DNA of 64,000 nucleotides, taken from Syncephalis fuscata S228 (lineage: Eukaryota > Fungi > Zoopagomycota). This document shows, piece by piece, positions 41,830 to 45,538 of the stretch; the first letter of the stretch is position 1, and every line of letters starts with the position of its first letter. The stretch is taken from NCBI GenBank assembly GCA_025786725.1, contig JAHLTZ010000004.1, positions 558,001 to 622,000 on the forward strand, given 5' to 3'. The notes beneath the pieces were generated by a model, which made no database searches, was not told where the DNA came from, and saw only the letters and a list, made by a program, of their open reading frames with translations. The translations under genes and the position numbers were made by a program.

Positions 41830-43002
41830 TTACAATGAAGTATCTCGTGTATGAACATAGGTAACATCAGGTACCTTAACACGTAGATCTTCCTTATGAA
41901 GTCGGATACGGTCAGAGAATTCGTGGTTAGTGTCGCGGTGCATAGCTTCATCGGCACGGATAGCCAGTGTAACATCGCGAATACGTGCATCTGTTGGCAA
42001 ATTCCAGTAGTCAATAGCTATTTGTGGTGCTGGATCATTGGGTATCTGTCCTTTATCGATACATTTAAGCATTTCTGTATAGGATATAATGGCTTCTTCT
42101 TCTAGATAGCCTACAACGCTAAATACTAATATAGTTAGTTGATTATTTGTATAATATTAGCATCAATAGTTACCGATGGGCTGTCTTGGACGATAATATG
42201 TACAATAGAAAGTAAACATTAAAGAATATACCCTATAACGAATTAGTAATAAATCATACTTGTGCTATTATAATGCTTACTTGAACTGCTGTTACAAGTG
42301 CTCGTTCAAGTAAAGTAGGTTCAGTTAGTTTAATCCAAACTTGTAAATGCATTCTAGAGAGTAGCTAGTTAATTTGTAATCAGTTATATCGGATAAAATT
42401 ACCGTTCATTTTCCGCTTCATTTAGTAGATGATGAATCCAGCCGTTATCATTTTCCATACGTCGTAGACTACGTAAGTGGAGAAGTACACCGGCTACCAT
42501 GCCAGGTACAGCGGCTACAGTCTCCAGCTTTATTATTTTATTAATACCAAGCTAATAATAGTGATGCAAATAAACTTACAGTGACAGCTCGATGTAAATA
42601 CTTTTCACGAAAGAAAGCATCGGCAAACATACGTAGAAACTTGACGGTTTTTAAAGCAACATAGTCGGATATATTTTCCGGTTTTCGATGATCATGAACA
42701 CCAATATCAATTTGTTCAAGTTCTTTTGTAGAAAGTGATTTAAGAAACTCGTCACGTACGAGTTCCGGTTTATGGTCTGGCAATCGGTGCTCAAGACTTG
42801 TTTGATAAGCTTGTTGTAGACAAAGAATGGCAGGTTGGAAGCGTACGGTTGTTCGATGTTCCAACATAAAAAGTCGCAACCACTATAAAAGAAGCAGCAG
42901 CAGCAACATAAGCTTAATGTAAATAATAAACATTTAGCATAATGTATAACTTACATGGTTATAGCGGCCAATAGGACGAGCAATTAAACGACTATGAAGC
43001 AT
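41830..43002 (-). CDS. AOX: Mitochondrial alternative oxidase
   Basis: Di-iron motifs [27 protein letters not shown] and [13 protein letters not shown] across spliced exons. Confidence 0.95.
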
Positions 43003-43398
43003 ATTAATAGTAGTCAGCTAGTTAGTTAGTTACGAAAGAATGCAAGAGCAGTTGTTCAGCACAGCAATTGTAAAATTCCCCCTGATATATTAATAGTAAG
43101 GAGGCAGGTGAACAATGTATTTATATCATACAATATTGCAATGATACAATAATTCGTATAATATGGTACATGTCAAATAAAATGTATATTTATTAAAAAT
43201 GCTTACTGGTTAATTACTTATTATCTGCTATAGTGCAAATAGTACAACGGTTACTGATAAATCAGCACTCATTTTAGTAATTAAAATGGTCTATAATTTG
43301 GCTGGTTGTCAGGTTGACATCTTTTTCATATTTCACTACTACGCAACTTCATCTTGCCTTGTTCACATTCCATTGTTCGTCTTGCTTACCCTATTGCT

Positions 43399-44222
43399 AT
43401 GGCTGGAGTAAAAAGTAAGTCTTTATTGATCTACATAGTCGCAATACTTATAAATCTATAATAATAATCCTTTACCATTTAATAGCGTATGTGTTTGTAT
43501 TGACTATAGATTCTCGTAAACCATAGCTTACTAACCGTGTTAATCGCTATGAATAATACCGATAATACTAACGACTAGTATTATTGGCCTAGCCTTTTGT
43601 TTGGCATGCGGTCTTTTACTTATTATCCTATCCTGCGCTCTTTATCAGAATTGGTGGCCAGTTCTTGTTGGTGAGTTGAAAAAAAGGGGAAATATATATT
43701 GATATTATAATAATCATAACAATAATAATGAACACTTGTACTGATAATGTATATGTTATTTAGCGGTAACCTATTGTCTGGCACCATTACCGAATATGCT
43801 ATGTACACGTTATGGCTATAGTGATGATATCTTTGTAGATACACAAATGTAGGTTGATGTATATATATATGTGTGTGTATTTATATAACACATTTAATTA
43901 ACCATGACTATAGGGGATTTGCTGATGCTGGCTACTTCCTTACTTCGGCACTTGTTGTTTCTGGACTGGGTAAGCTATATGATGTATTTATTGGTTAATT
44001 TATATTAACCATCTACTATAATTAAGCAATGCCTATGGTATTGGCCCATGCTGGTGTGGTATGTATAACTACTGGCCTATTTATTATTGATAACAACAAT
44101 TAACACTTAATACGATTTAGATTCATACGGCGGCCATGATTCAAAGTGTTGTTGGCGGCCTATTGGTATATGGGACTATTGTAGCGTACAATCACTTTTT
44201 CGGTCAAGATGATGAATTTTAG
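43399..44222 (+). CDS. VPS55: Vacuolar protein sorting 55 (OB-RGRP family); includes a probable 1-nt exon at 43486
   Basis: MAGVKTIIGLAF...LIILSCALYQNWWP...YCLAPLPN...FLTSALVVSG..MPMVLAHAGVI. Not present in the ORF track because the exons are short. Confidence 0.9.
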
Positions 44223-44543: not shown

Positions 44544-45538
44544 CTAATAATGATTCGATTCAGCTAAACAGATCTCTATCTCTTCCTCGCCATCTCCATC
44601 GCCATCTCCATCGTATTCATGATCAGAGAATGGGCTGTATAAATATGAGCAGGGAAGAGCATCTAACGACAGTGCCGACAACGATGAAGTAAGTTCAGCA
44701 GTTGCCGATAAAGGCATTGATGTCGATGTTGCAACTGGTGAATGGCGGTGATGATGGTGATGATGGCGTCGATGATGTGTTGTTGTTGTTGTTGTTTGTG
44801 GTGTTGTTGATTCTACACTGCACCGAGTTGTGAATGCATTCATAAGTGATGAGAGTCCGTCGTCATGGCCGATATCCATGCTGATAGAATTACCAAAACG
44901 GGTGTCGACAGAAGTATTCCATGTAACGGCAGCCGCTCCATTGCGATCAGATTCACGAAATGTTTCAGTCCATCTAGAGCGTTCTGATAGTGGCAATGCT
45001 TCTAAAAATCGCAAACGGGCTACTAAGCATTCATTGTAAGGCTGTAATTGACGATCTAGTGCATATAATGCTTGTTGTTGAGCCAATGGATCCACACTAT
45101 CGTTGCAAATACTAAGACCTCGACTGCTGGTCACACTATGGTTGCTACTGCCACTCGCCGTCGAGTAGGCTCGTCGTCGTCGTTCAGTATAATCCCTTCG
45201 ACGATCCCGTTTTCTACGTGGTACCGAAAAGGATAGACTATTCACTACAAATCGACGACTTTTTGCCGCCAGCTCTTTATGCGCACGCCGTACAGTAGTG
45301 GATAGATTGCCGGCTCCATTAGAACTAGCCGACGATGATGATCGTGATAACGAACGTGATGATAAGGAGGGTGACATTGGTATAGGCGTATCTGGGCGAG
45401 GATGTTTCCAACGTTTCGTGAATCGGTACCCCCACTGGCATGGACGTTCTGTTGTTGGTCCATCCATCATCCTTGTCGTTTGCGGATATAGGACGGCATA
45501 AAGTGTTCATGAAAAGAGGAAAACGCGTCGATATTCAT
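44544..45538 (-). CDS. Hypothetical Ser/Arg-rich protein; probable frameshift near 45471
   Basis: 308-aa ORF. An upstream in-register segment MNIDAFSSF... joins it if one base is added. No family recognised. Confidence 0.6.

Follow-up and report, generated by a model that had tools for sequence, protein, structure and literature searches.

In the VPS55 gene of Syncephalis fuscata S228 (Zoopagomycota), the first coding exon and the next long coding exon are one base out of frame with each other, and the question raised by this locus is which base restores the frame in the messenger RNA. The gene lies in a stretch of 64,000 nt of forward-strand DNA (contig JAHLTZ010000004.1, positions 558,001 to 622,000), here called the window, and all positions given without a contig name refer to it. 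The first-pass annotation, made from the sequence alone, had proposed that a single C between two introns serves as an exon of its own. We conclude that this base, C43486, is almost certainly a genuine one-nucleotide spliceosomal exon of the single-copy VPS55 gene. The call was based on the sequence signals and the mature mRNA product, and on finding this gene structure again in a plant and in several other fungi.

The VPS55 gene and its mature transcript

Members of the Vps55/LEPROT (endospanin) family have four transmembrane helices. The yeast literature describes a role for Vps55 in endosome-to-vacuole sorting together with Vps68 (PMC13133770). In the window, the VPS55 gene was located at 43399-44222 on the + strand, with seven coding exons of 384 nt in total that encode a 127-aa product of the Vps55/LEPROT family (Pfam PF04133). 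The features of the gene, with the evidence for each, are as follows.

43336-43398, +: 5' UTR, minimum extent; the spliced RNA contig begins at 43336
43399-43414, +: coding exon 1, MAGVK plus A, the first base of codon 6; sequence, RNA contig piece 43336-43414
43415-43485, +: intron a, 71 nt, phase 1, GTAAGT...TAATAG; sequence, spliced out of the RNA contig
43486, +: coding exon 2, the one nucleotide C; sole AG-N-GT of the interval, single letter C in the RNA contig
43487-43578, +: intron b, 92 nt, phase 2, GTATGT...TAG; sequence, spliced out of the RNA contig
43579-43670, +: coding exon 3, T followed by 30 codons (IIGLAF...YQNWWPVLV) and a final G; Pfam Vps55, RNA contig piece
43671-43763, +: intron, 93 nt, GTGAGT...TAG; RNA contig joint
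43764-43848, +: coding exon 4; Pfam match, RNA contig
43849-43913, +: intron, 65 nt, GTAGGT...TAG; the flanking pieces abut in the RNA contig, positions 280 to 281
43914-43969, +: coding exon 5; translation, RNA contig
43970-44026, +: intron, 57 nt, GTAAGC...AAG; RNA contig joint
44027-44058, +: coding exon 6; translation, RNA contig
44059-44120, +: intron, 62 nt, GTATGT...TAG; RNA contig joint
44121-44222, +: coding exon 7, with the stop codon TAG at 44220-44222; Pfam Vps55, RNA contig piece 44120-44300

Coding exon 1 reads ATG GCT GGA GTA AAA A (ATG plus 13 nt) and ends in phase 1, followed by GTAAGT at 43415-43420. The next long exon starts with T43579, the third base of a codon, immediately after a TAG that ends at 43578 and before ATT ATT GGC. 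All coordinates that had been given for the phase-1 end and for the one-base deficit of the next long exon were found to hold. C43486 is the second base of codon 6, so that A43414, C43486 and T43579 together form ACT, or Thr6. With C43486 included, the protein begins MAGVKTIIGLAF, in line with the fungal Vps55 consensus. When the N-terminus was checked against the consensus of two alignments, A1 and A2, the family pattern of MAGxK(T/S/A) and a first membrane helix up to CALYxNWWP was present as MAGVK + T + IIGLAF...CALYQNWWP. The earlier expectation that the split codon would give MAGVKTIIGL, as in fungal Vps55, thus agreed with the consensus MAGLKTIIxLAF of alignment A1.

The Pfam profile was scored exon by exon, against a family gathering score of 24.6 bits. 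The highest score, 40.6 bits, came from 43580-43669, where residues 1-30 fell on profile positions 1-30; 44121-44220 scored 25.1 bits (profile positions 90-120) and 43766-43846 scored 15.9 bits (profile positions 32-52). A scan of the genome with the Vps55 profile gave 52.7 bits for neighbouring pieces, and the assembly (371 contigs, 29.4 Mb) contains no second VPS55 locus. Outside this locus, L004 (G000:C317:343724-343837) matched the profile weakly (E = 0.5, profile positions 78-115), which could be due to chance or could represent a distant relative such as Vps68.

The interval between the two exons, 43415-43578, is 164 nt long, corresponding to 71 + 1 + 92 nt. Within these 164 nt, TAATAG/C/GTATGT at 43486 is the only AG-N-GT, with the acceptor ending at 43485 and the donor at 43487-43492, as the first-pass annotation had described. 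The interval contains 28 C's, of which C43486 alone sits between AG and GT; the other 27, none having both AG before and GT after, were rejected as the source of a C in the mRNA. To judge how easily such a site appears by chance, we counted YAGNGTRWGT in the 64-kb window and found four occurrences with both strands counted, where chance alone predicts 4.3. The probability that one falls within a particular 164 nt of one strand is about 0.006, and it falls to about 0.0015 if the single base has to be C, as it is in the RNA. The other introns of the gene are 57-93 nt long, and an undivided 164-nt intron would be an outlier of about twice their length.

The branch signals differ between the two introns. 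Intron a has a weak branch site, without a good CTRAY or TACTAAC motif, and from the sequence its candidate branch site would be AATAATC at 43464-43470. Intron b contains two perfect TACTAAC boxes, at 43530-43536 and 43566-43572. The branch A of the proximal box (43566-43572) lies just 7 nt from the AG, an unusually short distance. A perfect 12-bp hairpin was also seen at 43559-43587, with arms at 43559-43570 and 43576-43587 and the loop ACGAC. Both the proximal TACTAAC and the acceptor of intron b lie within this hairpin, which reaches nine bases into the next exon. The hairpin might favour the distal TACTAAC (43530-43536) as the branch site. Across 43405-43590 as a whole, the predicted RNA fold was no better than that of shuffled sequences (z = -1.23).

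The mature transcript was then compared with the gene model. One public run had a matching contig, 3712 nt long with a depth of 273, which aligned to the window in six pieces, 548 nt in all, without a mismatch. All six modelled introns were removed from it. The library type of the run is only guessed as RNA, but a contig spliced at six GT-AG introns must derive from mRNA. Between 43414 and 43579 the contig has exactly one letter, C, so that the mRNA reads AAAAA-C-TATTATT. The RNA junction that had been predicted (AAAA-C-TATTATT) was thereby borne out, and the proposed introns of 71 and 92 nt are both absent from the contig. With a single VPS55 locus in the genome, the possibility that the transcript came from a paralog was rejected. 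The contig begins at 43336, and the 23 nt that directly precede this window part are presumably the remnant of a sequencing adapter; 43336 may be the 5' end of the transcript, giving a 63-nt 5' UTR. The 3' UTR extends past 44300. The RNA support consists of one contig from one run, and an assembled contig cannot reveal minor isoforms or splicing intermediates, nor which intron is removed first.

To see what would follow from other splicing outcomes, we translated them in silico. Loss of C43486 caused a frameshift with a stop after nine codons (MAGVKILLA*), and retention of intron a ran into stops. A functional protein thus needs C43486, because both skipping and retention of intron a end in early stops. 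No isoform that skips the C was seen in the one RNA contig, in which minor forms are not visible, and inclusion of C43486 is probably constitutive.

Two neighbouring features were recorded. At 42544-42879 on the - strand, an ORF piece matched Pfam alternative oxidase (AOX) with 28.6 bits at profile positions 5-59; it probably represents a single exon from an AOX gene that lies upstream of VPS55 on the opposite strand. At 44547-45470 on the - strand, a 308-aa ORF rich in Ser, Thr and His runs is convergent with VPS55; it had no Pfam match. Used to seek an independent assembly of this locus, the ORF matched no record of the gene collection exactly. The 3712-nt RNA contig continues towards this ORF.

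VPS55 in other fungi

To explore whether other fungi share this gene structure, Vps55 proteins and their loci were collected. The queries were single exons or database proteins. A search of representative proteins with the peptide of the second long exon gave six usable matches, among them an environmental full-length Vps55 protein (P0004) that starts MAGLKTIIGLAF, and this led to about 160 fungal proteins. A search from P0005, an aphelid protein, gave four matches. A protein search with profile A2 gave 1623 matches, and the best 120 of these 1623 were almost all fungal, plus two crustacean transcripts. Four further loci were then read for the first coding exon, the microexon site, the next exon and the resulting codon, given below in this order with slashes at the splice sites.

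Geosiphon pyriformis (L005): ...AAAAA/GTAAGC; TTTCTAG/C/GTGAGT; CCCAG/C ATC ATC; ACC, Thr
Phycomyces blakesleeanus (L006): ...AAAAA/GTAAGA; CTCTAG/C/GTAAGT; TTCAG/C ATT ATC; ACC, Thr
Benniella sp. (L007): ...GAAAA/GTATGT; TTATCAG/T/GTAAGG; GGTAG/C GTC ATC; ATC, Ile
Contig L019/L020, 68% G+C: ...GAAGA/GTACGC; CCCAG/C/GTACGG; TGCAG/C GTC ATC; ACC, Thr

The flanking exons were one base out of frame in all four, with a phase-1 end upstream and a third-base start downstream. The inner acceptor has its own polypyrimidine tract in Geosiphon, Phycomyces, Benniella and L020, and a branch motif lies just upstream of it in Geosiphon, Phycomyces and Benniella (TACTAAC, CTGAC and CTAAC, respectively); in L020 the motif ACTGAC lies further upstream. 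Benniella contains a second, poorer candidate AG-N-GT that would give ACC (Thr) but leaves a 33-nt intron, and L019/L020 contains another candidate C, located 45 nt further downstream, with ACC (Thr) resulting from either. Judged from their sequences, Benniella and L020 thus have two candidate AG-N-GT each, and the exact microexon is not fixed. The comparison of gene structures that had been suggested at the outset accordingly returned an AG-N-GT at the homologous codon in four other fungal or eukaryotic loci, as well as in the Arabidopsis-like contig described below.

Other lineages have one or neither of the introns. Fomes fomentarius (L012) and a contig with 57% G+C (L016) have only the upstream phase-1 intron (A/GT...AG/CG or CC). 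No intron was found at the split codon in the chytrids Spizellomyces and Hyaloraphidium or in Tuber, where the codon is ACA or ACC, and the aphelid Amoeboaphelidium is intronless there as well.

Next, the residue before the IIxLAF motif was tabulated for the 148 fetched proteins in which the motif could be located. Thr was present at the split codon in 106 of the 148 fungal Vps55 proteins. The models from Dikarya and chytrids read ...KT almost without exception. Among the named models from Mucoromycota, about 30 of 36 were aberrant at exactly the split codon. Some had Ser or Arg in place of Thr, which fits a model that reads the final AG of the intron together with the first base of the exon. 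The Geosiphon model (L005 1660-1690) has an inserted NDMEIFF that comes from an invented 22-nt exon; we rejected this exon, since the seven inserted residues are absent from all homologs. The Rhizophagus irregularis model has an inserted YVF, and models from Rhizopus, Umbelopsis, Mortierella, Linnemannia, Mucor, Pilobolus and Backusella have N-termini misread from the intron. The wrong models were P0010, P0013, P0017, P0026, P0072, P0074-P0077, P0079-P0085, P0090, P0098 and P0148. Because the models go wrong at exactly the split codon, the pattern suggests that the one-nucleotide exon structure is general in Mucoromycota. Together with the loci listed above, the structure would cover at least Zoopagomycota and three subphyla of Mucoromycota. 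The annotation of VPS55 in Mucoromycota therefore contains a systematic error that alters the predicted first membrane helix, like the error reported for plants.

The plant VPS55 microexon

The first-pass annotation had pointed to one-nucleotide exons in plant APC11 and VPS55, and both are confirmed in the literature (PMC4674806 and PMC8831610). Yu et al. (2022, Nat Commun) reported a one-nucleotide microexon in plant VPS55-1, Arabidopsis AT3G11530 (PMC8831610). The supplement lists it as Cluster 2, Vps55, with size 1, phase 1 and blocks 19,1,52. Its cluster table gives the VPS55 microexon for vascular plants and the text adds other land plants, with fungi unmentioned in these portions of the paper. 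To compare the two kingdoms directly, a plant locus was recovered by scanning the published AT3G11530 sequencing primer against metagenome contigs. This returned a 31-kb, Arabidopsis AT3G11530-like contig (L013), which also contains the published forward primer and has the following structure.

L013, first coding block, 19 nt: ATG GCG ATG ACC ATC GAA G/GTAATC
L013, 2666: microexon, TTGGTACAG/T/GTAAGT
L013, 2772-2823: 52-nt exon, 17 residues
L013, following exon: starts GCA TGC GCG ATA TAT GGT AAC TGG TGG, at Pfam position 18

The block sizes of 19, 1 and 52 in L013 match those published, and the contig also agrees with the published 13-residue deficit of the annotated protein, as the next Met is residue 14 (PMC8831610). 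The split codon is GTA (Val7), with the microexon as its second base. In both the window and L013 the residue after the split codon is position 1 of the Pfam Vps55 profile (in L013, 17 residues before position 18). The distance from the split codon to NWWP is 23 codons in both, and GLAF lies at +3 to +6 in both. On these alignments, the one-nucleotide exons of plant and fungal VPS55 split one and the same codon, and the phases of both introns agree.

The similarities extend to the canonical AG/N/GT, to a first coding exon of just five to six codons and to an exon that is routinely missed by annotation. The differences are that the base is C (Thr) in Syncephalis fuscata and T (Val) in Arabidopsis, in a different kingdom, and that the introns are 71 and 92 nt here compared to 295 and 105 nt in L013. 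Plants also make microexon-less forms or paralogs (PMC8831610), whereas none were seen here in the one RNA contig. The conserved plant donor, GTRAGT (PMC8831610), does not follow C43486, where the donor is GTATGT; it fits the donors of Geosiphon (GTGAGT) and Phycomyces (GTAAGT) and does not fit those of Benniella (GTAAGG) or L020 (GTACGG or GTAACA).

The first-pass annotation had also suggested that a microexon shared with plants would imply very deep conservation. The positional part of this suggestion stood, since the codon and the phases of the plant microexon correspond to those in the fungus; that the two descend from one exon, and did not converge, is inferred rather than proven. From the gene structures, we regard it as probable that land plants and zygomycete fungi (Zoopagomycota and Mucoromycota) share an orthologous one-nucleotide exon in VPS55, which would date to the plant-fungus ancestor, near the last eukaryotic common ancestor.

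The exon could instead be real and have arisen separately in fungi and plants, by splitting of an inherited phase-1 intron at this codon, which we find doubtful but deserving of attention. Along such a route, for example, one intronic base with a cryptic AG and GT would be recruited after a one-base loss, and the shared position would follow from a shared ancestral intron; the scenario in the Fusarium paper likewise starts with a one-base loss (PMC12940212). Given two events, the coincidence would not be very improbable, as an ancestral intron leaves about two landing positions for the split. On the other hand, one-nucleotide exons are extremely rare, with three gene families in the literature searched, and it would be unparsimonious for two of them to have originated independently in one gene with identical codon position and phases. 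The base itself, C (Thr) in most fungi and T (Val) in Arabidopsis, speaks for separate origins, but Benniella may have T as plants do, and the base is then no clean marker of kingdom. Fomes and L016, with the phase-1 intron only, and the chytrids and the aphelid, which are without both introns, would also fit separate origins, but these absences are explained by intron loss, which is common. A single origin of the exon therefore remains our preferred reading.

Splicing of the one-base exon and its significance

In the mechanism that we propose, introns a and b would be removed one after the other, in an intron-definition mode. We infer sequential removal because the region of the intron b 5' splice site (AGC/GTATGT) overlaps the 3' end of intron a (TAATAG/C). 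U1, and later U6, would read the donor region of intron b, which overlaps the last bases of intron a. If intron a were removed first, a usable site AAC/GTATGT would be formed, and if intron b were removed first, the usable site would be TAATAG/CT. The branch sites would be near 43467 for intron a and the TACTAAC at 43530-43536 for intron b. In short-intron fungi, the introns rather than the exons would be recognized, and from this it would follow that there is no minimum exon size.

A regulatory role was also considered, in which skipping or retention would give non-productive transcripts that tune VPS55, or alternative proteins as in plants. In Selaginella and in non-vascular plants, some transcripts contain the microexon while others lack it (PMC8831610), and a perfect hairpin spans the 3' splice site of intron b in the window. 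In Syncephalis fuscata, however, the sole transcript form seen has the C (in one contig, where minor forms are not visible), skipping or retention leads to early stops rather than to an alternative protein, and the fold of the region does not rise above shuffles. We therefore consider regulation improbable; the simplest reading is that two old introns have persisted side by side, rather than that they form a regulatory device.

An assembly or strain artefact, in which the genome is without one C at an exon edge, the 164 nt are an ordinary intron and the internal AG/C/GTATGT is a coincidence, deserves almost no credence: the RNA contig by itself cannot separate loss of a C at the exon edge from a C taken inside the intron, but an internal YAG-C-GTRWGT has the low chance given above, an equal one-base deficit with an internal AG/N/GT is present in four independently assembled genomes and the Arabidopsis-like contig, the 164 nt are about twice the length of the other introns of the gene, and a missing C beside a run of A would be an atypical homopolymer error. 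An assembly deletion at 43414 or 43579 is thus very unlikely on the sequence comparisons and the chance estimate, and we return to C43486 as a spliced exon.

Recursive splice sites, or zero-length exons, and fungal stwintrons are known arrangements in which a 3' and a 5' splice site adjoin and two successive splicing reactions take place. The VPS55 junction differs from them in that it leaves one base in the mRNA, essential for the frame, whereas theirs leaves nothing. In a search of the full-text literature for one-nucleotide nuclear exons, only plant APC11, plant VPS55 and Fusarium CYP621A were found, and the search returned no report of a fungal VPS55 one-nucleotide exon or of one shared between plants and fungi. 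In Arabidopsis APC11, the one-nucleotide exon reported by Guo and Liu (2015, PMC4674806) is constitutive and correctly spliced, and shows that the spliceosome copes with a one-base exon; it is in another gene and at another position, and is known in land plants only. The Fusarium CYP621A P450 genes contain a one-nucleotide exon that its authors call the first in fungi (Nelson and Syed 2026, PMC12940212). As in VPS55, this is a fungal nuclear gene with AG/N/GT in which the single base is the middle of a conserved codon, the two introns together span about double the usual intron length, the exon is confirmed by RNA reads, and the gene models are wrong at the site (PMC12940212). In contrast, the CYP621A exon is confined in reports to Fusarium and Nectria orthologs and is apparently young (PMC12940212), whereas the VPS55 case spans phyla and matches plants.

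The VPS55 exon would be the second one-nucleotide exon known in fungi and the first beyond Fusarium, with support from RNA and from its recurrence in more than one fungal phylum. If the single origin is true, it would be the oldest known microexon, and two introns one base apart would have survived together for well over a billion years, while one or both disappeared from Dikarya, chytrids and aphelids. The plant link makes the age of one-nucleotide exons, and the capacity of the ancestral spliceosome for them, testable through the gene structures of VPS55/LEPROT, and Phycomyces, Mucor, Rhizopus and other experimentally tractable fungi are possible systems in which to study how a one-nucleotide exon is recognized.
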